DNA from: Dicyema japonicum
Taxonomy: Eukaryota; Animalia; Dicyemida
DNA length: 64,000 bases
Assembly: GCA_011109175.1 (NCBI GenBank)
Contig: RDEW01000003.1
Span: 1,484,429-1,548,428, forward strand
Reading direction: 5' to 3'
Both the position numbers and the translations under genes were made by a program. The notes beneath the pieces are model-generated. The model did not search any database, was not told the DNA's origin, and saw nothing but the letters and a program-made list of their open reading frames with translations. Positions 1,313 through 60,315 of this stretch are shown here, in pieces (the stretch's first letter is position 1; every line of letters starts with the position of its first letter).

Positions 1313-2904
1313 CAGAAAGTCTCTCGAATCCGCGAATTATAACTAATAAATTCTTTAATCCGCCATTTTTTGCTAACAAAATTTCTCGATTCCGCCATGA
1401 ATCCGCCATGTCTCTTAATTTTAAATAATTTTATAGATAAATAATTAAATTATTAACACGTTGTCATTGTTTATTGTTGTTTTTATGAAACGTAACTGTA
1501 CACGATTAAAAAACAAACAAAAAATTGCCATTTTAAAGTTTATTGAATCGAATATTGAATTACCTTCTATAAAAATTTCAGAAATTTTTTTTCAAAAAAT
1601 ATAATGCACCTATTTCTCTTAGATCTATTGATGATTGAGAAGTAAAAGAAAATCTGAAAATATGTTGAATAAAATCTGAGGATTTGTTACAAAATATGCA
1701 TGGAGAATCTGCAACTTTAAATTTTGACCCTATTTTGGTGTCAGATTTTATTGAATTAATCAAAAATAAAATCAATCTCTACGGAGCTCAAAATGTTTAT
1801 AATGCCGACGAAACTAGTTTATTTTACAAAATGATGCTGTCCAAAAGTGTTTGTATAAACCTTAAATCAGGTTATAAAGCATTAAAAGACAGAGTTTCAG
1901 TCATGTTATGCACAAATGTGGACGGTACAGATAAACGAACACCTTTACTAATTGGGATGTTTAAAAATCCTAGATGTTTCAAAAATTTTGATTATTATTC
2001 TAATTCAAAAAAAGCATGGATGGATCGCCGAATTTTTAATCAATTTCTTTTGAAATGGGAAATCGAATTGGGGAAGCATAATAGAAAAATTTTGCTTGTA
2101 AATAAATGTCCTGCACATAAAATGAATTTCATAACATTTACATTAGGTTTTGATTGAATTTAACCAAATTGAAATAATATTTCTACCAGCGAATACAACG
2201 TCGTTTTTGCAACCACTGGATCAGGGTATAATCAAATCGTACAAATGCAATTTCAATTCTCTTAAGTTTTCTAATATTATTCAAAAAATTGAAGCTGGGA
2301 TAAATCCCTATATTGCATACAAAAAATTAAACTTAAAAGATGCAATATTATTCACACATTATGCATGGAACAAGATTTATAGCTCCTTAATATTCAAATG
2401 GTTAACACACGCAAAATGGATTCAAAACATTGAAAGTATAAATTATGAAAACCTTGTCATTGAAAATTAATAATATATTTTAGAAAAAATGAACATAAGT
2501 GATCCTTTAGAAAAGAGACTTTATATCGAAATTGACTACAATGAAAATGAAGAACTTGATTTGAATGATTCGGAGAAAATAGAACAAGAAATTGATAGCG
2601 AAGAACCCGTTGAAGAAAGTCAGAAAGTTGTAACTATTATCGAGGCTTTTCTAGCTTTAAATAAATTAAAAGAATTCTATGATCAGGAAGAATTCTTTGA
2701 TGTCGAAAATCTTGAGTCAATTGAAAACCTTGGATCCTCAATGATCCGAACTCTAAAAAGAAACAAATCAAAACTTACTTATTTTTTTGCTTATAAATAA
2801 TTTTTTTGAATTACATTATTAATGGATGAAAAAATCAATAAGTCTCTCGAATCCGCCAGATTTTGCCGATCCCAGAAATTTGAATTTTTGCCGAGACTTT
2901 ACTG
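1313..2904 (+). mobile_element. Tigger/pogo DNA transposon with frameshifted DDE transposase
   Basis: Ends TA|CAGAAAGTCTC ... GAGACTTTACTG|TA (imperfect TIR, TA TSD); subterminal GAATCCGCC-type repeats; ORFs 1684-2157 (YNADETSLFYK, DRVSVMLCTN) and 2150-2470 (FLPANTTSFLQPLDQGII). Confidence 0.88.
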
Positions 2905-6968: not shown

Positions 6969-7217
6969 TTTAAAACTATTCTAATATATTAAAATAAACT
7001 TAATTAAAATAATTTTTTAATTAAAGTAAGGGGCCTCCTGAGTTAGATGGATCCGATTACGGCACTAGAAGTTAAGATTATTATTACCTTCAGGATCACT
7101 GGGTCACATAGAAAGAAATAAAAGTTCTCAACTAACTAAGTGATTCTAGACCGACAAGGGGGAGGACGAGTCTGGCGGGGTCGAGAATCCTCTACAGCTC
7201 TTTTAATTGGACATGAC

Positions 7218-7561
7218 TAGCCGCGTGAAAATTAGCCGCTTGGCGCCATGTGGTGCTGCGTGGTTAATTTGTTGAAGTTTTCTGCTTGCTTGTCTGTTCC
7301 TCCTCTCTCTTCCTAATAGAGTGGCGTCATGTGATCCACCTGTCTAGGTGACGCCCAGTGCCAGACCGGCACGAAAAAGGATCATTTGCTCTTCCCCACT
7401 CCACTGGAGGGGTTTCCACAACTGCATGTGATGGACGTCTTACCTTTTATGCTGATTCCGGATGGACTCTGTTTCTGTAGAAGTGGAAACTTGATACACT
7501 TAATTAGTTGGTTACTTTAACTTCTTTCTCGGTGTATCCAGGGTTAATAATAAATAAATAA
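7218..7561 (+). mobile_element. SINE-A: non-autonomous partner of the Ingi/Vingi-like LINE, full length with 13-bp TSD
   Basis: AATTGGACATGAC at 7205-7217 and 7562-7574; near-identical copies at 22.2, 42.8 and 55.6 kb; AT-rich tail. Confidence 0.9.
7323..7384 (+). ncRNA. Pseudoknot with HDV-ribozyme-like topology (SINE-A copy)
   Basis: P1 GGCGTC/GACGCC, P2 TGATCC/GGATCA, P3 ACC/GGT, P4 TGCC/GGCA, J4/2 CGAAAAA. Catalytic activity not established. Confidence 0.55.
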
Positions 7562-8733
7562 AATTGGACATGACATCGGCTAAAACTTTTACAAGTTTGT
7601 AGATATTTCGATAGTATATGAAGCAGAGGGCAGCTCGGTAGACTGGTCTCCTTTAAGAATTTTCGTTGTAATTCAATTAGAAGATTTTCAATAATTTGTA
7701 TCTTGTGCTCTGGTCCAATCCATTTCACTGCAGTCTCCTGGATTGCGGATAGTTTTAATGATGAGGATCGTGAAATCTGCATTGCCCACGAAGGACTTGC
7801 ATGTGTCATCGTGTGTCTGATAAATTTTTCATAAACTTTGGCAAGGCTCCCAGTTTGGTCTTTAAGTGTTTTTGAGACCATTTTTAAAAATTTTCACTTT
7901 CGTCAGAGCAGAAGTAACTTTGTTCTCAACGTGTCAGATAAAGGAGAGTCCCTGATCAAAGATGACTCTGAGAATCTTGCGTGTTGTGCTAGTAGGAGTA
8001 CCCTCGTTATTCATAAGAATTTTTGATTCATAGAGATGTCTTTTGTAAATGGTAAACAGCGTGACAGAAAACTTTGTTGCTGATATGTCAAGCCTCCGCG
8101 TCGAGATCCATACTTCTAACTTGTCAAGTATTTGTTGAGCGGACTGAGTCACTGATTGAATGCTTCTGTCTTCGAGGATTAAGCAGTTTTCATTATAGGT
8201 TTGTTTGATGACAGGTGACATGTCGTAAATTTTTTGATTTTTGATAAGAAATGACAGGTGATATGTGGATTGACACATGAAATGTAACCAGCACTGGATG
8301 GGTAACCCGGGGGGGACGTGACATATTATCACATAAAGAGATAAACATTTTATAGAGCACATGTTGAATATTTATGAATTTTTTAAAATAATAATAACGA
8401 TTTATTAACAAAAGATTTAAGGAGTTTTCTGGAGGGTGTGAATAACGGCAAAATATATTATGTCACATGGGCCTAGCGATACCTATGGGCAGCCTGTTAC
8501 ATTAACCTTGAACCAAGATTAACTTCAATTAATTTTATAAATGATTTATTAACACAAAAAATTAAATTTAAGTAACTTTTTTTAATCTACTCATTAATAC
8601 AGTCAATATTTCTCCTTTCGAATTTTTTATCTATCAAATTAAACCATTTAAAACTACCTCCACGCGATTATTCGATAAAATATTAATTATTTATGCAACT
8701 GGATAATACTGAGACTCAAACTTATCCAGTGAT

Positions 8734-10156: not shown

Positions 10157-10269
10157 CAATAATGAGACTCGACTCGTCCTCACCTTTGTCGGTCTGGGAT
10201 CACTTAGTTAGATGAGAACTTTTATTTCTTTCTCTTTGACCCAGTGATCCTGGGGGTAATAATAATAAT
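10157..10269 (+). mobile_element. 5'-truncated LINE 3' end inserted in the Ginger-like element
   Basis: 14-bp TSD AATGTCGGATAATC (10143-10156, 10270-10283); GGATCAC/GTGATCC hairpin; (TAA)n tail; homologous to 7075-7190. Confidence 0.85.
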
Positions 10270-13379: not shown

Positions 13380-13823
13380 GGAGCAGTTAGTCAAGTGATT
13401 AATTGGTCGGAAGGTTGACCTGGTTACGTAGCTCGTACACACTATGGCATAGCTCGGTAAACATATTGTCTTTATCTCCTAACGGTTGATATATCCTCGT
13501 ATAATAATAAAGCCTTTTAATGAGAGCCATAGTATTTATAGCTCCGCATAGGCAGAACACACACTTTATTTAAGTAAAGAACAGTTAATTTTAACTAATC
13601 GTAGAACCAAGGAATGATCTTCACTTCTTTTTTTCTTTTTCTTGTGTGAGTGTCCTTTCTAGACAATCCAGTTCCGCAGTGAGTATCCACTGATGACGGC
13701 GTCACTCATCAAACCCTTTCTGCATCGTAGATGCGTGGAACCTTCCACCAGGTGAACAGAAGCGAGATTCGAACCGTAACCTAAGCCACTTAAGCCCGAC
13801 ACCTGACCACTATGCCACCCGGC
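13380..13823 (-). mobile_element. tRNA-derived SINE (SINE-B)
   Basis: Head GCCGGGTGGCATAGTGG (A box) ... GGTTCGAATC (B box); body shared with copies at 15.6, 18.5, 39.5 and 63.6 kb; 3' boundary approximate. Confidence 0.8.
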
Positions 13824-13859
13824 TCGTATCCACATTTTAATGGATTCTGGAAATGTTGG

Positions 13860-15487: not shown

Positions 15488-15545
15488 TAGCCGCGTGGCG
15501 CCATGTGGTGCTTCGTGGCTAATTGATTGAAGTTTCTGTTTTGTT
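15488..15545 (+). repeat. Isolated SINE-A 5' head
   Basis: TAGCCGCGTGGCGCCATGTGGTGCTTCGTGGCTAATTGATTGAAGTTTCTG matches the start of SINE-A. Confidence 0.75.
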
Positions 15546-22093: not shown

Positions 22094-22249
22094 GCGCTTT
22101 TTTAAGTTTAAATGTTTGAATTTAAATTTAGCTAAATCATTTTATTGGTTAAATAAATAATTTTTGAATTAACTTGCATTTAGTACAAAACTTTGGTAAT
22201 ATCCTAAGCGGCCCATTTAAATTCAATGAAATTATTCTAAGGACTTTGC

Positions 22250-22560
22250 CGTGTGGTGCTGCGTGGCTAATTGATTTAAGTTTTTATGTCTGTTCGTCTG
22301 TTCCTCCTCTCTCTTTCTATTAGAGTGGCGTCATGTGATCCACCTGTCCAGGTGGCGCCCAGTGCCAGGCCGGCACGAAAAAGGATCATTTGCTCTCCCC
22401 CAATCTACTGGAGGGGTTTCCACAACTGCAAGTATGGACGTCATTTTCCTTTTATGCTGATTCCTGATGGACTCTGTTTCTGTAGAAGTGTAAACTGGAT
22501 ACACTTAATTAGTTGTTTAATTTAACTTTTTTCTCGGTGTATCCGGGGTTAATAATTTAA
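22250..22560 (+). mobile_element. SINE-A copy (slightly 5'-truncated); pseudoknot at 22327-22388
   Basis: High identity to 7218-7561; 3' stem GGATACAC/GTGTATCC. Confidence 0.88.
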
Positions 22561-23075
22561 TTTAAAGACCATGGGTAAAACCAACCATACTAATCCTGAG
22601 ATTTTGAGTCGTTCCAGTAGAGCCCTTATTTATGCACAATGATCCAAGGACATTGTTCGGGATGCTGATATTGATACAGCAACTCGTCGCAAAGGATCGA
22701 AATAGTCTCCAACTCTTCTTTATGTTCTTTCTCCGACCAACGCACTTTCTATACACTCGGGGAACATTTTAATGCTTCGAGGATATCATTTGGACGACCG
22801 TTTCCTTCAAAAGGATCTCGAATGGTGTTGATCACAACAGGGTAGTCAAGAAAAGCTTTAGGGTTTTTATAACTGTCACTTGGAAGTCGTCGATCTTTTT
22901 TAGGTTTGTTTTAGATAGGCCTGTACCCCATGCAGCGCATCCATAGCTGATCTTTGGTTGCATGTACTGGGTGTAGAGTGATTTTATCGATAAGTAGAAA
23001 CAACTTCCATAGTGTCCCAGGAGATATTCTTCCACCTCATCGTTTGTGGATGTCGACGATGTGAACATCTTTATT
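22561..23075 (-). mobile_element. Ingi/Vingi-like LINE 3' fragment
   Basis: YTQYMQPKISYGCAAWGTGLSKTNLKKIDDFQ, homologous to 32600-32710. Confidence 0.75.
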
Positions 23076-27900: not shown

Positions 27901-28019
27901 TCTTACATTATCTACAACAATTATTGACCCCACCACTCAACCTTCTCTTTACTTGAATTCACTAACCACAGACACAAGATATCTGTTTGGTTTTTCTGTT
28001 CATCCTCTTCTCTTTCGAA

Positions 28020-28170
28020 TAGAGTGGCATCTTGTGATCCACATTTCTCAGGTGGCGCCCACTGCTACGATAGCACAATAAAGGATCATTTGCTGTCCCC
28101 CACTCGATTGGATGGGTTCCACGACTGCAAGGAATGGACATGTTTTACCTTTAATGCTTATTCTGGATGT
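28020..28170 (+). repeat. Divergent SINE-A-related copy; pseudoknot at 28026-28088
   Basis: P2 TGATCC/GGATCA kept; P4 changed to TGCTA/TAGCA; downstream leader homologous to SINE-A. Confidence 0.75.
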
Positions 28171-28779
28171 ACTTTTTAAGGATTCCTGGACAAAATCAAA
28201 AAGCAGCAGGGGGGAAACAATTGATTTACTCAAAACGAAACGTATGAGTTTGGTAACGCTTCCACTGAAATTGTTTATTACCAGCAAAAATTCTTGGAAT
28301 TCAAACGTTGGAAAAATCCAATACGTGTGACATTCGGAAGGCCAGAATGTCTCAAATACTGACAATTTACCCTTTAAGGGGGACGTAAATATTGTGTATG
28401 CCAAATAGATTCAGCAGTAATTTAAACCAGTATGGTTGTACGAGCAGAATAATTTAATGAATGAACACCAAATAGTAAGCTGACATTATAATTTAACCGA
28501 CTAGAACACTATAACTAGAAATTGACTTGTAGTCATTAGTCAGTCGAACATATAACACCGATATTATCTCAACTCCATCCATAATCCCTGTGACAGACCA
28601 TCCTACACACCATCATGTCACAAAAACAAGGATCGTGAAAACACTCTAGATTTAGTAGATCTACTACATGTACCCTTAATATTTCAGAGTAAAGAGTATT
28701 AGGTTAATCTAATGCTGACAACAACAAACATAAAGCAAATAGAACAGTGACGAAATAAAAAATAGCCAGAAAAGTTAAA

Positions 28780-30450: not shown

Positions 30451-30991
30451 TATAAAAGTGGGATTCTTACAGAAACGAGACTAAATGCGTACTCGGAGAC
30501 TTTTCTTGTGCTTCTTTCCGCTCTTTTGATGCCTTTTCAAGTTCTTCACAAACTCCCTAATTACAGTAAACAAAAAATTCATTCCCGTGATTTCATCGTT
30601 AATCGTGGATTCTAATTGCTTTCCTACCTAACAAAGATTTTTTAAGGTTTCCAGAAAAATCTTCCGAGTTAACATGCCTTTCATTAAAATGGTGGTTAAG
30701 CATACCATATTTAGTTATTGATGACACATCATTTATTTACATAACCCTAGGAAACATCGAGAAAGAGGGTAATGGTAACCAGACTAATTAGGCGATCCCG
30801 ATTCCCTTCATCACTCTAGGCATTTTCATCCTGTGCTCATCGAGAAACTCAAACACTTCCCGGAAGTGTCTGCGCTTGTGTCTATAAAGGAAATCGACGG
30901 GGGACAGATGTCTGAAGGGTCGTCCATTTTCAGATGGCTCCATGGATGAACATAGTCGATTTCCTTGTTTCTACTAGAAATATGTTAGCGT

Positions 30992-31052
30992 GGCGTCATG
31001 TGGTTCACCTTTCATGGTAGCGCTCAGTGTTAAATTTCACCAAAAGGAACCA
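30992..31052 (+). ncRNA. Pseudoknot with HDV-ribozyme-like topology at LINE 5' end
   Basis: P1 GGCGT/GCGCT with G1-U wobble, P2 TGGTTC/GAACCA, P3 ACC/GGT, short weak P4, J4/2 CCAAAAG. Confidence 0.55.
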
Positions 31053-31136
31053 TATTCTCTTCCTATCGAAACTCCTCGTATGCCTGGATGGTATACCTCA
31101 ACTGGAAACTCGAGATGTTGTTTGTTCCCCTGGATT

Positions 31137-31175
31137 CTATTGCTTTCTGGAGATATTGAACAAAACCCTGGACCA
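31137..31175 (+). other. 2A-like ribosomal skipping (StopGo) motif
   Basis: In-frame LLLSGDIEQNPGP fits the D(V/I)ExNPGP consensus, directly upstream of the APE domain. Confidence 0.85.
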
Positions 31176-32949
31176 AAACCCCTTGTTATTATGCAACTCA
31201 ATGCTAACGGAATAAAAACAAAGATTCTGAAGTTACGATGTCTATGATCGAAACACAAGATTGACATTTGCCTTATCCAGGAGTCAAAATATTCTAGAGT
31301 ACAGCCCCACTTTTTCCTGGATACATCTCTATCAGAAAAGACCGTATTGGACGTGGTGGCGGCTTACCATTATTAAAAACGGTTTATCCTTCCACGATGT
31401 GAGCTCGCAAGTTAATGATTTAATCATTATCTACATGGCAGGACCCCGGAATAACTTATTCTAATCAACATTTACATTCCGTCGCCGGGCCGCCGGGATC
31501 CGTTCCCTACGATTTTCATAGTGATCATAATTCGAATATATTAAAACTGAGCCGATTCAATAACTCACGTAGAATTAAAGCAACCTTCAAGATCTACAAG
31601 AAAGCTGACTGGTCAAATTTCAAGCTCTTCATTGACCATAACCAAATATATTTTGATCCCAGCTCATTTTGCTCCATCGACAAAGCTGTGGACCATCTAA
31701 GCCATATAATCCTTCGAGCTGAAAAGTTGTTTGTCTCACGTGCAGTTTAAAAATCCTACAAAACTACTCTGGACTCGGAGACTCGTCACCTCACCAAGCA
31801 AAGAAACTCCCTGAAGATGAATCACCAACAAACCTCTTCTGATTTACAACCTAATGAAATATTACGCATCTATAAGTCACAATGACTTCTCGAAAACTCA
31901 TTCTTGTCACCTTCGGAATTTAATGCCTAAACCAACTTCGTGGATCGATTTATTTACGCATGCCGAGGTCACACAGGCTATAAGATCGATGAAGAGATCT
32001 TATACGTGTGGTCCTGACTATATTCCGGGAATTCTGTTAAAACACCTTGGTAATGTTGCAATCAACCGGAAGAAGAGGACTTGTCTGTATAGGCCACACA
32101 AGATCGAGGTCCCGTCTTCTACCAAATGGCGTCCCTCAAGGATCGCCCTTCTCTCTGGGGCTATTCAATTTATTCCTAAACGATTTACCCTGCCCTGGAA
32201 GATCAGATTCAATGCTTCTTACATATGCTGACGACTTAATTATTACTAGCAGGAGCAAATACGTGGATATGGCAAAATCAGAGCTCAGTCACATATTGAT
32301 GACCTGGGAGCCTGGTTGAATTTCATCGGTCTGTGTGGTCACGAAACAGTCGTTTCTTCCATTCAAGACTAAAAGCCTCAAATACACGTAAATTGGAAAA
32401 AAAACCCACCCCTTTTCAAAATCTAATGAAAGGTGATCGTCGTCGGTGCAGGAAAGCCGTGGGTACTCTGGAGGAACATAAGAAAAACCTCTCGATCTTT
32501 TTGAGCTGTACCGGGATCACTCAATTAGTTGGTTTATTCTTTCTTTCTTGGTGTTCCCTTTTCGGGGTTATTAAATAAAAAATACTCAACATTAAACGAC
32601 CTTTATACGCAATACATACAACCGACAATCAGCTACTGTTGTGCGGCATGGGGTACAAACCTATCCTATACCAACCTAAAGAAAATCAATGCCTTACAAG
32701 AAACTGTCACAGGGGCCTTACAAAGGTTCTCCTCCTCGCCACAATGCCAAATCCGTTCGAGGAACTTGTGAAGAAAACGGGAACCCGTTTGAAATCTCCA
32801 AATTTCCGAAAAGTGGATCATCCATACAAGAAGTGTGTCAGCTCTCGAGAGGAACAACGAGAAAAAATTAGACCGCTGCATAAGGAAACCGGGATTACTT
32901 CGGTTCCCTTTCTCTTTTTATTTTGTCGGTGATTCTTGGTTTTAAATAA

Positions 32950-33010
32950 ATACACTTGGGAAGAAGTTAATAGTTGACGACTAATTAAATGTATCCAGTT
33001 ACCATACAGG
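32950..33010 (-). repeat. SINE-A-like 3' tail fragment
   Basis: Reverse strand AACTGGATACATTTAATTAGTCG...AAGTGTAT resembles the SINE-A 3' end. Confidence 0.55.
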
Positions 33011-42788: not shown

Positions 42789-43100
42789 GTGGCTAATTGG
42801 CTGAAGTTTTCTGTTTTGTCTGTTCCTTTTATCTCTTCCTATTAGAGTGGCGTCGTGTGTTCCACCTGTATAGGTGGCGCCCAGTGCCAGGCCGGCACGA
42901 AAAAGGATCATTTGCTCTCTTCCTACTCCACTGGAGGCGTTTCCACAACTACATGTATGGACGTCTTTTACCCTTTATGTTGATTCCGGATGGACTCTGT
43001 TTCTGTAGAAGTGGAAACTGGATACACTTAATTAGTTTTAATTAGTTTTTTACTTAACTTTTTTCTCGGTGTATCCGGGGTTAATAAATTAAATAAAATT
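42789..43100 (+). mobile_element. SINE-A copy; pseudoknot at 42849-42910
   Basis: High identity to other SINE-A copies; one mismatch in P2. Confidence 0.88.
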
Positions 43101-43109
43101 AAATATGAC

Positions 43110-47391: not shown

Positions 47392-47429
47392 ATACTTTTA
47401 TAATTGAAAAAATATTTTTTGCTGATGTG

Positions 47430-49660
47430 TGGTTTTTTGTAGAGCTGAAAATACTGTGTTGCTTGATCATGTCTATTATAAATCCTGCTTCTATTAAAAA
47501 TCCCTCCTGTTCTCCCCTTACTGTCTGCTCTACCCAAGATAATCATTGTTCCATCATAGATCATCTCTTTTATACCCTCGAATATCCATGTTCTGCTGTG
47601 GACTATCTTTGTTCTACTAGTTATCCATCTAGTTTTACTATAGATTATCCAGTTTCTACTATAAATCCCTCCAGTTGTAGTAGTGCTTCCCTCAAAACAA
47701 CCCGCGAAGCTGTTAATTGTAAGAAATGCCTTTTATCAAACGCCCTGAAACTGGTGGTGTTCTGCACCCAATGCTCATGTTATTTCCATATCGGATGCGT
47801 AAAATTATCCAAGAAAATTGGAAATCTTAAAATTTGGACTTGTCATTCATGCATTTTTCGATCCGTTCGAAAACTTTCACTCTCCAGCTCTCTGCTCTGA
47901 GACCGAATCCCCATCCCTATAGCTGTGAGGATCACTAAGGCAGAAACTCTTTCACGCCTAATTCTGCCATTTCTTCTAGACATCCTGAAGACTGCTAGTA
48001 CCCAGATCAGGAGTAATGTCAATTATGACTGTTGATCTGGATACCTCGCTTGAAGACCGTGGTATCCCCTTACAAGAATGGGAGAATATTATGGTGTCCT
48101 CAATAAAAAATAATCTCCAGAGAAGAATAGAGCGAAAACTCATTGAAGGGGATACCTGCGCCGCCTTCAGAATGGTTTAGTCAAATGACACTATTGCCTT
48201 CTATTCGGCCTCAACCTTGGACACTATCGTTAGGAAACACTCCTTGAGGCCAATAGACCATATTATTGTTGCCCTACCTTGCAGTCTTCCCGTCCTGTTA
48301 TTTCCGAGGAGTCATTTGCTAACGGAATTCGATCCTTCCACAGCTCCAGCAGCGGGGGATTGGTGGCTTACGACCTGGGCACGTAAAAATGTGATCTTCA
48401 AAAGCACTGCCGAGACGGTAAGAAACATAATTATAAATTTAACCAACAGACTACTCTTTTGAGAGGAACCTTATTCAATGCTCTTTTACACACATTCAAC
48501 GTTGTATTCGTCAAATTGCCTTAGGGAATTACTTTAGACGTTTAGCATTAATGATTTCAGAGAAACTTGTATGCAACCGTTTGAGTGGGGGATGTCTCCA
48601 ACCCAGCTTGCATTTGTCTCTCATGGATGTGAGGCCGCCATTCATTCAACACGCTTGTTTGCCTCCTCCTGTAATCTCAGAAAGCGCAAGCTAGATCATC
48701 AATGCATTCAATTTCCACAGGCGTGATCACATGTTAGAGTAATGTGTTCATAGAACACCTGAAAAAGCTAAATTTATCCATCCTTCTTATGGATTCGAGA
48801 GTTCGCTTGTCTTTGAGATCAAATTGTCGTCACTTCGACTGATGTTCAGCAAGGTGATCCTGTTGTACCACTCTTATTCTCCCTTACCAAGTTATTCAGA
48901 AGATTTCGGCTCCGCTTAATATTTGGTACCTATACGATGGAACGATTGGTGGAGACGCTTCGATTATCGACACTCTGGAAATAACTATTCGGAATATGCG
49001 AAAAACAGGGATTACAAATGTTAGCTTTCCACCGAAAGACTTTTCCATTGTCAAAAACCGTCTGGAATATTTGTTGAGGAAGTCGAGACTTCTGTCACGG
49101 TTTTCCTCGGATGCCTTGTCCGAATTGGAAATATTTACGAAGAAGAGTCGATTCGTTCCGTTTCATTACGGAAAAGTTTAGAACTCTTGAAGGACACATC
49201 CCTTTTCTTAATGAAAAATAACGATTTTGTTCCCAAGATGATCTTCTCATTACGAAGTCCCCCTTGTTTCCACAAGTCTGATTCTCTCAAATCTCTGAAG
49301 GATCTTATCAGACAAACGACTAAAGAAATTTTCAATATCCGATTTGATATCACTGGCTGGTTCCAAGAAAAGCTCTCGATAAGGTTTGGGGAGTAGGTTT
49401 GAGATCTGCCGATTTTGGCTATTCCAGGATACCTGTCGTCCCTCGCAAGCTGTTGTGGTTTAACCAACTCAGTCTAAACACGTTTGTGCAGCAGTGGACA
49501 ACAATCGGACTAGGTGTCCTTAAGAACTTCCGCAGCGAGTCCTGCTGAAGATTCGAAATGGAGAAAGTACCTATAGAATACCTAACTTCTTCATCGACAA
49601 ACGAAAGTGCTGCCTTCCAATGCACCTCACTTGGGGCACTATTGGATGACGACGTCACGA
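47430..49660 (+). mobile_element. CRE-like non-LTR retroelement with N-terminal PHD finger, decayed
   Basis: CxxC...CxxC...HxxC...WxCxxC at ~47720-47855; QQGDPVVPLLFSL; WYLYDGTIGG; LSIRFG.VGLRSA..AIPGYLSS. Confidence 0.7.
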
Positions 49661-50149: not shown

Positions 50150-52265
50150 CTATTTACTTACAAAAATTACAGATTTATTACTCATTCCTTTCACAGTCGA
50201 AAATATGTCCTTTCTAATTAAATTCGCAACATCATCCTTTATATAATTTTCACGTCTGATGTGTTTCACATATTTGTAAATTAACAAAATCACCAAAAAC
50301 AATAACCCCAAAGACACGACGGCAATCAAAACTCTAGTTTTTAGGGTTTCCGTGAATACTAATTTGTGTGCTTTTTCTTTTTCGATTCTTACATACGTTT
50401 TATCCGTGAAATTCAAATTTCCACAATCAACTGCGACGATGATTAACGTGATTTTAGTGGATGAAAGACTAGAACAGTCGATGCAATAAATCCTCCCATT
50501 ATCCACGTGAATAATAACGATTTCATTTCGGTCCGTAGATACTTGCTCAATGGTATATTCGGTCACATTATTCGGGGAAATATCTCTGTCCACCGCAATG
50601 ACTATTCCCAGAAGTTCTGTAAAGTTATTGACTTTAAAAAAATATTCTTTACTAGGAAATAGTGGGGGATTGTCGTTAACATCGGTTACTATCAATTTGA
50701 TTTTGTATTCGTTTACATAAAACATGTATAAATCCTCTTCCTCTCTATCAAACGATACTTTTGAGTATAATCTCCCCCTTTCTATTTTAATGAACTGATT
50801 AGAAAATGTCTCATTTTCAGTAAATGTCTTCATTTTCCCTATAAAGTGTCCAATTGGAGAGTTCTCGGATACTCTAAATGTATATTCTTGGTTATAATAA
50901 GTTCCCCCAATATTAAATCTTTCAATAAACTCAAGTTTCTGTGATTTTGAATCATCAAGACATGTTATCTTGCATGTGATATCATTGGAATTATTATTTA
51001 TCACATTACTGAGAACGATATACTGTCTCAGTCTGTGAGTATAAAGTAATCTCAGAGATATATCATCAACAGAACAGCTCATGTAGCCCATCGACATGAA
51101 TTTTGGTTGGTATATCACAAAATATGCTAAGGGAATACTGCGTGGAATGGTTATGGGTACTGTTTTTCTTTTAAATTTGAAGAAAATGGTTGGAGTTACT
51201 TGCTTAACAAAGTCTAAATAAATTATTGCCTTTGAAGTGGTCTTATCTGAGGGACCTAGTGCATCCCAGGCAATTAGACTGAGAATATAATAATTAATCA
51301 ATTTTGTCTCGATTTTGTTAAAGCAAATAAGTCCTGTCGTCTAATCTAATAATATATAAATTACCGCGTTTATGTTGAACACATCTCTGTAATACCACGG
51401 AGTTGAATCAGATATACTATATGACACGTGGTTGTCCAAGTCTTCGTCAATTGCATGGACGAACCCAATTGGTACGGAATTATTAAAAAGGCTGAATTTG
51501 GTGTGGTTTAATGTAAAAAAATATTGGGAATAATCGAATTTAGGGGAATTATCATTGACATCCACAATATTCGCGTGAATTATCATTGAGCCAGATTTTG
51601 AAGGAGTTCCCTTGTCGTAAGCAGTCAATAAAATGAAAATGTTCTTTTCCTTCAAACAATTTAAATTTACCACCTTTTCGTAATCAAACATTCTAGTGGG
51701 ACTAATATACATTTGCACATTTCCATGAGAATCATTCACAAATTTCAATATAAATGAATCAGTGTCGTTTATGGTATAATTAGATATCCCATAGTGCTGA
51801 TCGAGGTCAATGGCTGGGGCAAGTCGGAAAAGATCTCCAATTGTATTCTCAACAATCTAACATCAAAATTACTCTTACGTGAATTTTAAATAATTTTGTT
51901 GAAAAGTATGGAAAGTTGTCGTTTTTATCAATTACAACCAAGGATGCTGATATTGTGATATTATATGTGAGATAAATCTGCATCTCTAGAGAGCACTCAA
52001 GTTGGCCTTTCAAATTTGGACAAATATCCTCTCTGTCGAACGTTTTAGTGGACTCGATGTCACCACTATGCGAATCGACAGTAATGAAGCCGGAATATGT
52101 GATTTGTCCAGGACCTATTAGAATTACTGTTGGAAAATTTAGCTTTTTTATATGAGGGAAATCTGAAAAAATATTTCCTATAATAATTTTTGGGGGCTCC
52201 TCTTCGATAATTGAATAAGTAACTGTAAATTGTAGAGTTTTCAGAAATAAGCAGAATTGCAACAT
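50150..52265 (-). CDS. Protocadherin-like single-pass membrane protein
   Basis: YSIIEE..IIGNI, FDREDIC (EC1), three DxNDN linkers, AxDxG motifs, TM VLIAVVSLGLLFLVILLIY, short tail; short introns. 3' end may be spliced. Confidence 0.88.
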
Positions 52266-54542: not shown

Positions 54543-55620
54543 GCGTGGCGTTATGTGGTTTACCAATTCTGTAAGTATTGGTAACTCCCAAAGGGCATCT
54601 AATGTTCCTCCAAAGAGAACCATTAAATGTTTACCTCTGAGGATATTTTTCCCGGCGGCACGCACTTTCAGCTACACGTTCTACAACTAAGTGTCAATGG
54701 AGTAAGGGGCAAAATATTGGAACTGTGCTCTTTCCTGGTCAAGCTGACGATCGATGTGGCTTTGATTAAAGAGACGAAACTCCCATTAAACATCCCTACC
54801 CCGTTGTTTCCTGGATACAAGTCAATACGACTAACCGGAAGAAGTGGGTGGAGGCCTACTTATTATATCGGAAAGACCTTAAATGTGTGGACATCACTTC
54901 AGTTGTGTAGAATATTTTAAGAGACGACGATGTTACTGAAATTAACGCAATCTCACTTGGAAATTTAAAAATTATCTTAGTAAACATCTACGTGCCTCCA
55001 TTTGGTTTTTATCCGAAGCACTACGCTATGCCCAATTTATCCACTGTGGCTTCCTTGAACGACGCAATCATTGGTAAAGATATCAGAGCCAAACACCCTC
55101 AGGCTCGAAAGTCAACTATTCGATACAAGAGGAAAAGTACTATCATCGCAGACAGGCCCTTTCACGGTCATGACCCGTCAAACATACAGATCAACTAACT
55201 TCCCTAGACATCACGCTTTGTTCTACCGGCTTGGCAGCAATATTGACCTGGTCGGTCACTTACAACTCAAAAAGTGACCACAATCCTATTCTTCTTAAGA
55301 TCAAGAGAGAAACTAACTGAGAGGAGGTCTTCAGAACAATTCAACTACAGACGTGCAGAATAGAGACTTTACCATCACTTACTGACAAACAACCTATTGC
55401 AGTAGCTTTACCTAGATGGCAGTACTTCCATGGAAAAAGAATTCGTTTATGTAAACCGCACTATCTTGGATGCGAGATCACTATCTGTGCCTAAACACTA
55501 CCTTAACTACGCCAGGTGATATGGTAGGTCTGCATTAATCAAGGAAAGAAACCGACTCAAAAAGTCTGCACGATTAACTACTGAGGATAAGCGTAGACTG
55601 AAGGCTTTGAACAATTCTTC
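54543..55620 (+). mobile_element. Divergent Ingi/Vingi-like LINE 5' region; pseudoknot at 54547-54622
   Basis: GCGTGGCGTTATGTGG head; LQLSVNGV, LIKETKL, NIYVPP (APE). Confidence 0.7.
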
Positions 55621-55940
55621 AGCGTGGCCCATGTGGTGCTACGTGGCTAATTGGTTGAAGTTCTCTGATTGTTTTGTTTGTTCCTCCCCTTTCCCTTCCA
55701 ATTATAGTGGCGACATGTGATCCACCTGTCTAGGTGGCTTCCAGTGCCAGGCCGGCACGAAAAAGGATCATTTGCTCTCCCCCACTCCACTGGAGGGGTT
55801 TCCACAACTGCATGTATGGACGTCATTTACCCTTTATGCTGATTCCGGATGGACTCTGTAGAAATGGAAACTGGATACACTTAATTAGTTGTTTACTTTA
55901 ACTTCTTTCTCGGTGTATCCGGGGTTAATAAATTAAATTA
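55621..55940 (+). mobile_element. SINE-A copy; pseudoknot at 55709-55770 with P1 disrupted
   Basis: High identity to other SINE-A copies. Confidence 0.88.
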
Positions 55941-56169
55941 ATTAAAACTGGCTAATTAAAGTCACCTCAGGGCATTCTCCTGTTAGTTACCATTGTATTA
56001 TATTTTATTAAGTTTTAGGGTTTAGATATAATTACTCTGTCATTGTTTATCATTTCCCAAAATTCTACGTTTCCTTCAGTTTTTACGATTATTCAGGTTT
56101 CTACTTTAATTCCTGCTGAGATATAATCTTTCTTTGTTAGCAGGTTTTAAGTGCATTTGTAAGTTAGAG

Positions 56170-58080
56170 AGTATACGCCGGATTTCTAAATCAATAGCTT
56201 CGAATTCACGTGGTTCAATGTCGATGAGCCCAATATAATAATTATATAGCGAGAGTGCGTATTCATTATCTCTTTAAACAAGTTTACAGCGTTTAATTTC
56301 GAATTTGCCAACTTCTCTATCCTTTTCTTCACATTTTCAGCAATTTTTTCCATAATTTTGTCCTTCATAACCTTACTCCCTTTATCTTCTAACACTCCAA
56401 GATAGCGATATCCCTCATAGTCATCCAGATAACTTGATCTTTGGCACATTTCAGATTAGTTGCAGACTTTTCACAGTTTCTTTTAACGCCAACAACACCC
56501 AGATATTCATCAATATCCTCCATCATTTTTAGAATTGTATTTTCACATTCGGCAATTATTTTCAGGTCGTCAATAAAGAAAATGGTTAGTCGTCACAATA
56601 GACGGATCACTCTGATCAATACATATCTTCGGGAATTTTATATTTAATATTCGGCTTAGTGGGTCCATTACCAGAGTAAACAGCTGAAGAGAGAGTGAGT
56701 CTCCTCGTAAGATTCTTCTCCCGAGTTTGACCTTTCCAATTCTTTTTTTGTTAAGGTTCAAAATAACATTCCACTTGCTTATTAGATTCTTGATAAACTT
56801 CACAATCCATTCAGGAACTCCAGAGCTATCAAGAACCCGACACAAAAATTCATGATTGACAGAATCGAATCCTTCTTCACATCGATCTATGTTGTGAATA
56901 AGCTATTTCCATGTTCAGCATTAACACACTGATTTATTAAAGCCTGCTCTTTTGCACCTTGGCACTGCCTTCTTGCTCCAAGCTGATTATCCGAGATAAG
57001 ATTGAACCCTTCAATATAATCCGTAAGTTTTGTATTAACACATTTTGTGACAAGTTTGTACAATATGGGCATGCACGTAATTGGTCGTAAGTCATTCGGA
57101 GACAGCAGTCTTCTTTTTTCGGAATGAGGTACGTAATCCCTGATAGAACCATTCTTTCAGGCAATATTCACCACTCACTATCTTGATAATCTCTTCACTC
57201 TGATAACTATGAAGAGAATCAAATTTCTTGACAAAAAATCCATATACTCCATCACAGCCAGAGCTCTTCCAATTCGGCGTATAGTGAATAATGTTCTTAA
57301 CGAACTCAACTGTCATATCTAACGGTAACTCCTCCGCTCCTGTTATTCGCCTCCCAACAATATTTCTGTGAAAATAATTCTGATCCTTTTCCAATACATC
57401 TTTCCAAAATGACACGCACTCATCTTCTGTAACTTTACAATCACTATTATTGACGTCATCGTTGAGCCTCCGATAAAACCTCTTTTTGATCAGCTCAAAA
57501 CATAAATTATCTCGTCTAAAGGATTTTCTTGATTCATGAATTGAGATTTTTTTCTCCATGATCTTGATTTTATCTTCAATTAGGGTAGAAATCCTTTTCA
57601 GTTCTCCCTTCTTTGATTTCTTGTATCCAAACGAGCACAAAACATCAAGCGTTTTCTCCCTTTCTTCCCTTGACTGCTTCCCAGTAAACCCATAAACTAA
57701 GGCGCAATTTTCTTTGAATTTTGCAATTCTCTTTCCACGTTTTCCCTCCAACAGCTTTTTACTGATCGCTTCTTTGTCAAAAGCATCAATTATGTCAGTT
57801 ATCTCATTCATGTCCGTTGGAGGAGATGATGACACATAATTTAATATCACTCCATTTAATGTAGTAAGAACATCCTTTTTAACCAACTTATATGGAATCT
57901 TTTGTGTGGGTTTCCTTCCATCTCGGGGAACTGATTTAACTCTCAATTTGAACATACATTCTTCTTTGCATCTTCCATACATGGAAATTTCTGTTTTTGG
58001 TAAGTTGTTCTCTGAACCTCCTGATCCGATTAAAGTATCTCGACTTTTCTGGTCCACGGGTGTCTTTTAAATTGGCTTTA
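56170..58080 (-). mobile_element. R4/Dong-like retroelement ORF remnant (RT)
   Basis: NWKSSGCDGVYGFFVK, GITYLIPK, MPILYKLVT, NQLGARRQCQGAKEQALIN, GDSLS.QLF, HFLFIDDLK, YRYLGVLE. Confidence 0.8.
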
Positions 58081-58598: not shown

Positions 58599-60315
58599 AC
58601 GTGGCGTCATGTGGTTCACCTTTTGTGGTGGCGCTCAGTGTAGTAATACACCAAAAGAACCATTTCCTCTTCCCCATCCAGACTCCTTATGCCTGGATGG
58701 TATACCTCAACTGGAAACTCGAGATATGCAACTCAATGTTAACGGAATAAAAACAAAGATTCTGGAGTTACGATGTTTATTAACGATGCACAAGATTGAC
58801 ATCTGCCTTATCCAGGAGTCAAAACTTTCTACAAAGAGTACAACCACTTTTTCCTGGATACATCTCTATCAGAAAAGACCGCATTGGACGTTGTGGCGGC
58901 TTACTTACAATTATTAAAAACGGTTTATCTTTCCACGATGTGAGCTCGCAAGTGGATGATTTAATTCTACACGACAAGACCGCGGAACAAATTTCTATTG
59001 ATCTTATTAATGGGTCAGAACATCTTATTCTAATCAACATTTACATTCCACCGCCAGGATCCTGTCCTAATAACTATGTTCCGAAACTCGATAAACTACA
59101 AGAAATTCGAAATGTGTTACTATGTGGGGATTTCAACGCCAAACATCCACAATGGCTCAGTACCCAGTCGGCAGACAAGAGGGGGAGTCTAATTATCGAA
59201 TCTCTCGAAAAATGGTGATTCTGAATCACCCGAACATCTTCACAAGGACACCAGTCCGGAGAAATGACTGCCCAACCTCTCCGACATATCCATTGTTTCC
59301 TCTAGGATTGCCCCGAAGATTTCATGGAACGTCTCCTACGATATTCATAGTGATCATAATCCGTTTATATTAAAACTGAGCCAATTCAATAACTCACGTG
59401 GAATTAAAGCAACCTTCAAGGTCTACAAGAAAGCTGACTGGTCGAATTTCAAGCTCTTCATTGACCATAACCTAATACATTTTAATCTCACCTCATTTTG
59501 CTCTATCGACAAAGCAGTGGACCATCTAAACCATGTAATCCTTCAAGCTGGAAAATTGTTTGTACCACGTGCAGTCTACAGATCCTACAAGCCTACTCTG
59601 GACTCGGAGACTCGTTTTCTCGTCAAACAAAGAAACTCCCTGAAGATGAATCATCTGCAAACCTCTTCTGATATGGAAAATATAAAATGCTTAAATCAGA
59701 GAATTACAAAGCTCATCAGAGAAAAGAAAGATAGGGCGTGGAACCTCCTATTATCGTCTATTGGACATATGAAATCACGAGTATTTTATGGAAAACTAAT
59801 CGTCGATTCAAGCTAAACTTATCAGATGGATCAGAATCTTTTTCTGCTCTAAATACTGTGCAAGCTAACAACCTAATGAAATATTACGTATCCATAAGTC
59901 ACAAGACTTTTCGAAATCCCATTCTTGTCACCTTCGGAATTTAATGCCTAAACTAAGTTCGTGGATAAATTTATTTACGCATGCCGAGGTCACACAGGCT
60001 ATAAGATCGATGAAGAGATCTTATACGTGTTGTCCTGACGGCATTCCGGAATTTTGCTAAAACACCTTGGTAATGTTGCAATCAATTCAATTACGTCAAT
60101 TTTTAATTTGTCTTCTAACATGAACGTTATCCATGCAAATGGAAGAACTCACTTATAATACCAATCATAAAACCAGGAAAACCAAAAACCTTACCTTCTT
60201 CCTACCGTCCAATATCATTAACGTGCGCATTATCGCGCCTAATGGAGAAACTCGACTCTGGAAAATTAAACCCCATTTGCCCGACTGCCACTTTTCAACA
60301 TGGTTTCAAATGTGA
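58599..60315 (+). mobile_element. Ingi/Vingi-like LINE 5' half; pseudoknot at 58603-58662; 2A region deleted
   Basis: Collinear with 30988-32050; LIQESKL, NIYIPP, CGDFNAKH (APE); ends in the RT N-terminal region. Confidence 0.85.

Follow-up and report, generated by a model that had tools for sequence, protein, structure and literature searches.

The window, i.e. the whole stretch of 64,000 nucleotides of Dicyema japonicum DNA analysed here, is rich in transposons and carries eight copies of a short module of 60–76 bases, with starts at 7323, 22327, 28026, 30992, 42849, 54547, 55709 and 58603 (Table 1). At all eight starts the segments follow each other as P1-J1/2-P2-P3-L3-P3'-P1'-J1/4-P4-J4/2-P2', the order given in the original prediction. 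A covariance model built from the copies, a check proposed together with that prediction, retrieves exactly these eight copies in the window; they are likewise the only window loci found with an nhmmer profile, all on the plus strand and with E-values of 1e-14 to 1e-25. A strict HDV-topology descriptor (no more than one mismatch in a P1 of 6–7 bp, P2 fully paired, 3 bp in P3, P4 as a hairpin and C as the first base of J4/2) found five intact plus-strand loci (7323, 22327, 30992, 54547 and 58603), none on the minus strand of the window and none in five shuffles of it; a looser first descriptor was too permissive to discriminate. The three copies missed by the strict descriptor are mutated, with several mismatches at 28026, a P2 mismatch at 42849 and P1 mismatches at 55709. 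Decay is evident in the focal copy at 30992 as well, with a C6×A mismatch in P1 and an L3 (TTTCAT) that offers no partner for J1/4. Clustering of all eight copies on the plus strand is expected by chance in 1 of 128 cases (about 1 in 64 for either strand), and may reflect an insertion orientation bias within a large transcription unit.

Table 1. Module copies, segments of the focal copy and the elements that carry them (window positions; for Octopus sinensis the locus is given with the position).
Feature	Position	Strand	Remarks
Focal module copy, family B	30992-31052	+	5' end of a decayed LINE; covariance model match of 84 bits
Conserved leader GTTAGCGT	30984-30991	+	directly upstream of G1; part of the element, not flank
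Focal P1, GGCGTC	30992-30997	+
Focal J1/2, ATG	30998-31000	+
Focal P2, TGGTTC	31001-31006	+
Focal P3, ACC	31007-31009	+
Focal L3, TTTCAT	31010-31015	+
Focal P3', GGT	31016-31018	+
Focal P1', AGCGCT	31019-31024	+
Focal J1/4, CA	31025-31026	+
Focal P4 region	31027-31040	+
Focal J4/2, CAAAAG	31041-31046	+
Focal P2', GAACCA	31047-31052	+
2A-like peptide ORF (MPGWY...LLLSGDIEQNPG/P) leading into an APE domain (MQLNANGIKTK...)	31080-31178	+	family B, copy at 30992
Family B, best-preserved copy in the window	58603-58662	+	module copy; G1-U wobble in P1; P4 GUGUA-GUAA-UACAC
Family C, another LINE 5' end	54547-54622	+	module copy; 15-nt L3, possible P3 extension; APE-type ORF from 54627
Family A, full-length element	7218-7561	+	module 7323-7384 (+); 13-nt TSD AATTGGACATGAC at 7205-7217 and 7562-7574
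Family A copy	22248-22565	+	module 22327-22388 (+); intact by the strict descriptor
Family A copy, diverged and truncated	27976-28173	+	module 28026-28088 (+)
Family A copy	42789-43109	+	module 42849-42910 (+); P2 mismatch
Family A copy	55622-55951	+	module 55709-55770 (+); P1 mismatches
Isolated family-A head (leader, P1-like GGCGCC, ATG, TGGTGC...)	15488-15535	+	joined to an unrelated body
Family D elements, O. sinensis	L122 9987-12859; L123 9987-12850; L124 9988-12319; L120 2987-5858

Self-BLAST and alignment sorted the copies into three retrotransposon families. The original prediction had treated them as one family; only three are situated at LINE 5' ends, and the other five occur in the interior of a SINE-like repeat, about 105 nt from its start. 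Family A (n = 5; 7323, 22327, 28026, 42849 and 55709) is a SINE-like repeat of about 340 nt with an A/T-rich tail, in which the module is internal. Its head (7218 to about 7265 in the full-length element) is a partial second module comprising the leader, a P1-like GGCGCC, ATG and TGGTGC, i.e. the 5' strand of P2. In the diverged copy at 28026, P4 is compensatorily changed to UGCUA/UAGCA, and mismatches occur in P1 and P3. Family B (n = 2; 30992 and 58603) lies at the 5' end of an APE-type LINE that has decayed and whose ORF carries a 2A peptide at its N-terminus, a feature described before for single-ORF APE-type LINEs (PMC3708506). Downstream of the focal copy the 2A core GDIEQNPGP, a canonical ribosome-skipping motif, lies at 31149-31175 (+), within ...LLLSGDIEQNPGP, in the ORF of the decayed LINE and preceded by a hydrophobic LLLS stretch; this core matches that of the L1Tc motif (DIEQNPGP). 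The copy at 58603 is followed by an APE fragment (58796-59218) matching PF14529, and the UG of its L3, TTTTGT, can pair with the CA of J1/4. Family C is represented by the single copy at 54547.

Several other features of the window should be noted. Inside the family-B LINE, 56 nt of the family-A body are found inverted (32950-33005 (+) vs. 55864-55918). Inverted repeats of 96 nt, 90.6% identical, at 7077-7172 and 10171-10266 bracket about 3 kb including the family-A insertion with the module at 7323, and may be the terminal inverted repeats of a DNA transposon. A tRNA-derived SINE-like stretch at about 13700-13830 (-), with the reverse complement of the B box gagattcgaacc, is unrelated to the module. 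ORF fragments carry the signature of a DDE_1 transposase (1684-2157 (+), E = 6e-13) and, just below cut-off, those of a PHD finger (47427-47900 (+)) and a cadherin (50150-51301 (-)); for the latter, a 383-aa ORF, no homologue was found at E ≤ 1e-10. Finally, a 321-aa ORF and several shorter pieces at 56186-58057 (-), between the C and A copies and the family-B copy at 58603, look like another decayed retroelement, with no Pfam match for the long ORF.

In a full HMMER search, the best relative of the family-B APE fragment was XP_029655350.1 of Octopus sinensis (45% identity), a protein with an N-terminal 2A; one protein relative is named Tcoingi-like. Four O. sinensis loci encoding members of the XP_029655350.1 protein cluster were examined, and each places the module exactly at the annotated gene start. 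These four young copies, here family D, share 93–99% identity along about 2.9 kb and terminate in (AAT)n. As about 2.9 kb is too short for a full LINE with APE and RT, they may be non-autonomous, still-amplifying deletion derivatives. The D tail (GGCTTAAATAATAAT) resembles that of SINE family A in the window (GGGGTTAATAAATTAAAT), a hint of a shared mobilising LINE group. The same loci contain three copies of family E, a SINE of about 335 nt whose internal module has an L3 of 27–29 nt and is preceded, at a distance of about 115 nt, by a true tRNA B box (GGTTCGAATCC). Both families supply further covariation to the module. Among more distant 2A-LINE relatives (L121, L125, L126 and L127) no module was detected by profile, covariance model or descriptor, and protein word searches with the module-through-2A ORF, the cadherin-like ORF and residues 1–60 of P0001 returned nothing useful. 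Matches to GGCGTYATGTGRTYYACC in metagenomes (119 loci) were put down to chance, as only two passed a loose downstream check and neither was convincing.

The fold was evaluated on an alignment of 12 sequences from six families, a small sample drawn from about 140 kb. Given the pseudoknot, 87.7% of the cells are paired, compared to 31–53% when the partners are slid by 1–3 columns. None of 500 shuffles reached the observed covariation score or paired fraction, although relatedness of the sequences inflates this test. P2 is 98.6% paired, with three columns changed on both sides (UA/GC, GC/AU, CG/UA), and P1 is 90% paired, with alternations CG/UA, GC/GU and UG/UA; P3 (ACC/GGU) hardly varies. The P4 hairpins differ in sequence from family to family (GUGCC/GGCAC, UGCUA/UAGCA, GUGUA/UACAC, AGGGCAU/AUGU-CCU, GAUAC/GUAUC and GGAGGCA/UGCCUUC). 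Conservation in the alignment is highest in J1/2 and the 5' strands. Unguided, RNAalifold recovers P1 and P3, and single-sequence folds alternate between P1 + P4 and P2 + P3 + P4, as expected of a pseudoknot, P1 and P2 crossing each other. Despite the six-family sample, the fold is convincing in view of the slid controls and the independence of the P4 sequences. Thus, the nested double pseudoknot of the HDV type is real and conserved in these elements. The descriptor and the alignment in this way bear out the predicted HDV topology with covariation in P1, P2 and P4, and the individual pair swaps had been read correctly: TGATCC/GGATCA vs. TGGTTC/GAACCA in P2, GGCGTC/GRCGCY vs. GGCGTT/AACTCC in P1 (the latter with one C-T mismatch), and TGCC/GGCA, TGCTA/TAGCA and TGT.../...ACA in P4.

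A pyrimidine-rich block (TTTGCTCTCCCCC-like) is kept directly 3' of the module in families A, B, D and E, 10–15 nt after P2', and falls outside the HDV fold. Pairing of the leader with the CT-rich stretch after P2' is not conserved and was ruled out. A further candidate explanation, that the module is a remnant of a tRNA B box (GGTTCACC resembles GGTTCGANNCC), was rejected, as family E has its genuine B box elsewhere and ARAGORN found no tRNA.

An invariant C opening J4/2 is a hallmark of HDV catalysis. The original prediction had this C as kept, and it is present in all 12 aligned sequences. J4/2 is 6–7 nt long and continues after the C with N and a run of A's, four or five A/G in all (CGAAAAA, CCAAAA(G), CCAAAGA, CUAAAAA); for family A, this candidate catalytic base is predicted to form the closing pair of P4 with a G. 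In the published HDV descriptor, G1 pairs with Y, P1 has 7 bp, P1.1 is CC/GG, L3 contains U..CG and J4/2 reads CRRA (PMC6326823). G1 is paired to C or U in 10 of the 12 sequences and in five of the six families, as a G1-U wobble in the 58603 copy and in the family-E copies E2 and E3 and as G1-C in A. Family D has a C1×C mismatch at the base of P1, leaving 5 bp, and family C one internal C-U mismatch. P1 amounts to 6 bp in A, B, C and E, and a seventh A-U pair is available only by borrowing the U of P3'. This length had been regarded as an anomaly, but it is not unusual: R2 ribozymes have a P1 of 6 or 7 bp, a J1/4 of 0–2 nt and few invariant bases (PMC3774820).

A departure from the HDV descriptor concerns L3. 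In the HDV fold, the U-G reverse wobble of the conserved L3 U...C-G holds the catalytic metal (PMC6326823, PMC3386971). L3 of the module is non-canonical and variable, as predicted: it spans 6–29 nt, has no conserved position and lacks U..CG. It is the least conserved part of the module, with 6 nt in A, B and D (UGUCYA, UGUAUA, UUUUGU, UUUCAU, UUUUCU), 15 nt in C and 27–29 nt in E. J1/4 reads CA in A, B, C, E2 and E3, GG in D and GA in E1. The CA junction of the original prediction is therefore present, but rather than being merely aberrant it can pair with UG of L3 as a possible P1.1, and the O. sinensis relative has GG together with UC in L3. A dinucleotide matching J1/4 occurs in most L3s, at loop position 1 (A), 4 (B) or 6 (C), although a 2-nt match easily arises by chance. 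Within the same 6-nt loop, the change from UG/CA in B to UC/GG in D looks compensatory, as for a possible P1.1; L1TcRz cleaves with only a 1-bp P1.1 (PMC3185411). The suggested comparison with Rfam gave no match at gathering score for the whole window, and none to HDV-family models at E ≤ 10 around two window copies and D, E1 and E3 in L122. This is weak negative evidence, as the models are narrow and cannot encode pseudoknots.

A TTAGCGT-like leader of 8–9 nt precedes G1 in A (distal head), B, C, D, E1, E2 and E3, and the internal modules of family A carry the variants TTAGAGT, ATAGAGT and TTATAGT. In the four young D copies, TTT(T)AGCG is common to all, with unrelated flanks beyond, so that the element starts 8–9 nt upstream of G1. 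The SINE A head begins 9 nt before its P1-like GGCGCC, and in both B copies and in C the element starts at least 3–4 nt upstream of G1. None of the 15 copies starts at G1, and every covariance model match spans upstream model positions. Inheritance of the leader and the lack of copies starting at G1 imply that the reverse-transcribed RNAs began 8–9 nt upstream of the predicted cleavage site. A simple model of cleavage at G1 followed by copying does not predict such a leader. Read in this way, the 5' ends point to an internal transcription start with little or no cleavage in the template population, and suggest that self-cleavage is not what sets the inserted 5' ends of the elements. The idea that the leader itself provides P1, and that cleavage falls at -8, was rejected: pairing of AGCGU with P1' is possible in B and E2/E3, whereas A, C, D and E1 do not allow it.

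The module also contains, or lies close to, a start codon. In all four family-D copies no in-frame AUG other than that of J1/2 precedes 2A, and the ORF runs from MWFTFSGGA... through the module to GDVEQNPGP and on to APE; the NCBI gene model of family D starts at the same AUG. Codons 2–24 coincide with the pseudoknot, which is thus itself translated. A start at the J1/2 AUG and the 2A peptide after it were absent from the original prediction. In SINE family A the J1/2 AUG is followed immediately by UGA, and in family C an AUG lies 5 nt after the module. Use of the J1/2 AUG as the start of family B could not be upheld: its distance to the 2A-frame ATG is 82 and 80 nt (81 would be in frame), and owing to these 1-nt indels the family is uninformative on the start codon; the 58603 copy reads in frame, possibly as an accident of a 74-nt deletion. 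Ruminski et al. reportedly found in 2011 that retrotransposon HDV-like ribozymes assist translation initiation.

A close parallel is L1TcRz/Pr77 of the trypanosomatid elements L1Tc, ingi, NARTc and SIDER, where the initial ~77 nt of a single-ORF LINE of the APE type adopt an HDV-like fold (PMC3185411, PMC3383444, PMC4035085, PMC1874656). The L1Tc ORF also has an N-terminal 2A, DIEQNPGP as compared to GDIEQNPGP here, and the arrangement of module, N-terminal 2A and APE is found in B and D. Sharing with non-autonomous derivatives is a further likeness, seen here in SINE families A and E; SIDER2 carries two signatures, as does family A. P3 ACC/GGT with P1' directly after it is found in the Pr77 oligo, although by eye only this P3 and the segment order are common to the module and the R77 oligo (PMC1874656). 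Dual promoter and RNA roles have been proposed for L1TcRz/Pr77 as well. Conversely, in L1Tc the cleavage site and TSS coincide at +1 (PMC3383444), whereas here 8–9 inherited nucleotides precede G1. Pr77 has no AUG, whereas J1/2 of the module does, opening the ORF in family D; L3 of L1Tc (UCAACGU) keeps U..CG, which is lost here, and the present host is a metazoan.

The ribozymes of R2, R4, Dong, Baggins and RTE share the nested double pseudoknot at LINE 5' ends, and R2-type ribozymes also a P1 of 6–7 bp, variable P4 and J1/4 and the catalytic C in J4/2 (PMC3774820). They differ from the module in that L3, P3 and P1.1 are their most conserved parts, whereas L3 is the least conserved here; J4/2 is about 4 nt there and C-N-A4-5 (6–7 nt) here, and an internal position in SINEs with no copies ending at G1 is particular to the module. 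A different kind of likeness, drawn by description only, exists to the head of mollusc LP-SINEs, i.e. the first ~68–70 bp common to Nimb-17_LMi, I-3_DR and RTE-9_CPB, for which a promoter role was proposed (PMC4758252). In both cases a short LINE-derived 5' domain occurs across unrelated LINE clades and was recruited as a SINE head, followed by a CT-rich stretch in TSD-flanked copies. Still, the LP-SINE head was read as a promoter with no RNA fold proposed (PMC4758252), and here the complete module is internal in SINEs with only a partial copy as head. SINE central domains (CORE, Deu, V, Ceph, Nin-DC, MESC) are likewise conserved across families, measure 45–150 bp and lie between promoter head and LINE-like tail with no established function (PMC4758252); the module differs in having an identifiable LINE 5' origin and a pseudoknot supported by covariation.

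How the fold is used can be discussed on this basis. A possible, if tentative, alternative to the reading preferred below is an active HDV-like self-cleaving variant: host co-transcripts would be cut 5' of G1 to release an uncapped RNA, which the compact 5' pseudoknot would protect while promoting translation from the AUG at +7. Genomic copies with a leader would then stem from a minority of uncleaved, promoter-derived transcripts, and cleavage would perhaps be slow or context-dependent. The covarying HDV topology, the invariant J4/2 C followed by A's, the G1-U wobbles of the 58603 copy, E2 and E3 together with G1-C in A, and the possible P1.1 with its compensatory change between B and D all fit such an activity. 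There is also precedent in the 1-bp P1.1 of L1TcRz (PMC3185411), in the lax R2 ribozymes (PMC3774820) and in L1Tc, with the same architecture of ribozyme, 2A and APE and the same P3 ACC/GGT (PMC1874656). However, 0 of 15 copies start at G1 and the leader is inherited; moreover, two successful SINE families carry the module internally, and cleavage there would sever the promoter-bearing head. The 6–29 nt of L3 lack the metal-binding U..CG (PMC6326823), the youngest family, D, has a 5-bp P1 with C1×C, the candidate catalytic C of family A is predicted to close P4, and no Rfam HDV-family match appears even at E ≤ 10.

Quite improbable is a DNA-level internal promoter and nothing more, comparable to the "LINE promoter" head of mollusc LP-SINEs and with incidental helices. 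It would account for the occurrence of the first ~45 nt by themselves at 15488 and at the outermost 5' end of family A, and for the preferential conservation of J1/2 and the 5' strands, and a promoter was indeed proposed for the LINE-derived mollusc head of ~68–70 bp with its CT-rich stretch (PMC4758252). Yet it predicts neither the compensatory double changes in P2, P1 and P4 nor 88% pairing vs. 31–53%, and family E keeps the fold internally despite a tRNA-type promoter of its own. A chance resemblance, i.e. a repeat that can merely be drawn as an HDV fold, is barely credible. The family-A copies are close relatives and have inherited their common pairing, but across six families, which differ in flanks, body and species, the pairs persist although the sequences that form them have changed, and the descriptor finds nothing in shuffles or on the minus strand. 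Covariation of the module is seen both in LINEs and in the non-coding SINEs, for which neither a pure promoter nor chance accounts; its fold thus appears functional at the RNA level.

Judged from its sequence contexts, the feature is a conserved RNA module of non-LTR retrotransposons, positioned at LINE 5' ends (B, C, D) and captured internally by SINEs (A, E). We assign a probability of about 0.5 to the reading that this HDV-fold module is a LINE 5' cis-element whose main present role is other than 5'-end definition. The original prediction had offered a new ribozyme variant or a non-cleaving descendant; the frame was right, and the evidence leans to the latter for those RNAs that became genomic copies. 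In the cis-element reading, the first ~30–45 bp (leader, P1, J1/2 and the 5' strand of P2) would act at the DNA level, with a probable TSS about 8–9 nt upstream of G1. A separable promoter part is what we infer from positional conservation only, namely from the ~45-nt head found alone at the 5' end of family A and at 15488. The folded RNA would be a cis-element of the retrotransposition RNP, as a putative binding or recognition site for a LINE protein, and SINEs would exploit recognition by the LINE machinery by copying the module. In LINEs the fold would, in addition, form the structural context of the start codon, and in D the 2A would split the leader peptide imposed by the RNA off the APE(-RT) protein. 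By origin, the module is probably a descendant or a sister of the HDV-like ribozymes found at the 5' ends of L1Tc/ingi, R2 and RTE elements. It may retain weak or conditional self-cleavage; the J4/2 C, the G1-U/G1-C pairs and the compensatory P1.1-like change are easier to explain if the RNA cleaves. Rather unlikely, finally, is a non-cleaving 5' identity module that LINE proteins recognise and SINEs copied for mobilisation, with 2A discarding a structure-forced peptide; an obligatory position at the extreme 5' end of the RNA would then explain why the fold overlaps the ORF start.

Ribozymes of the HDV type have been described at the 5' ends of LINEs, and both the 2A peptides of LINEs and SINE heads of LINE origin are likewise known. 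In the searchable literature, no paper was found that links LINE ribozymes, 2A and SINE heads or describes this module family, and the 2A literature covered does not mention ribozymes. Four features were not found together there: a start codon within the fold and, directly after it, a 2A peptide, a catalytic loop L3 free to vary while the remaining fold covaries, an inherited leader, i.e. copied RNAs not cut at G1, and capture of the fold as an internal domain by two SINE families. Should the module cleave, the U..CG of L3 would be dispensable and the sequence space of active HDV-like ribozymes wider. If it is a recognition element, it would link 2A in single-ORF LINEs, SINE central domains and the cross-clade "LINE promoter" head. 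As an identity module, it would give a functional reason why non-LTR elements carry 2A and why one class of SINE "central domain" exists, and could explain the ~70-bp 5' domain of Nimb, I and RTE LINEs and of mollusc LP-SINEs.
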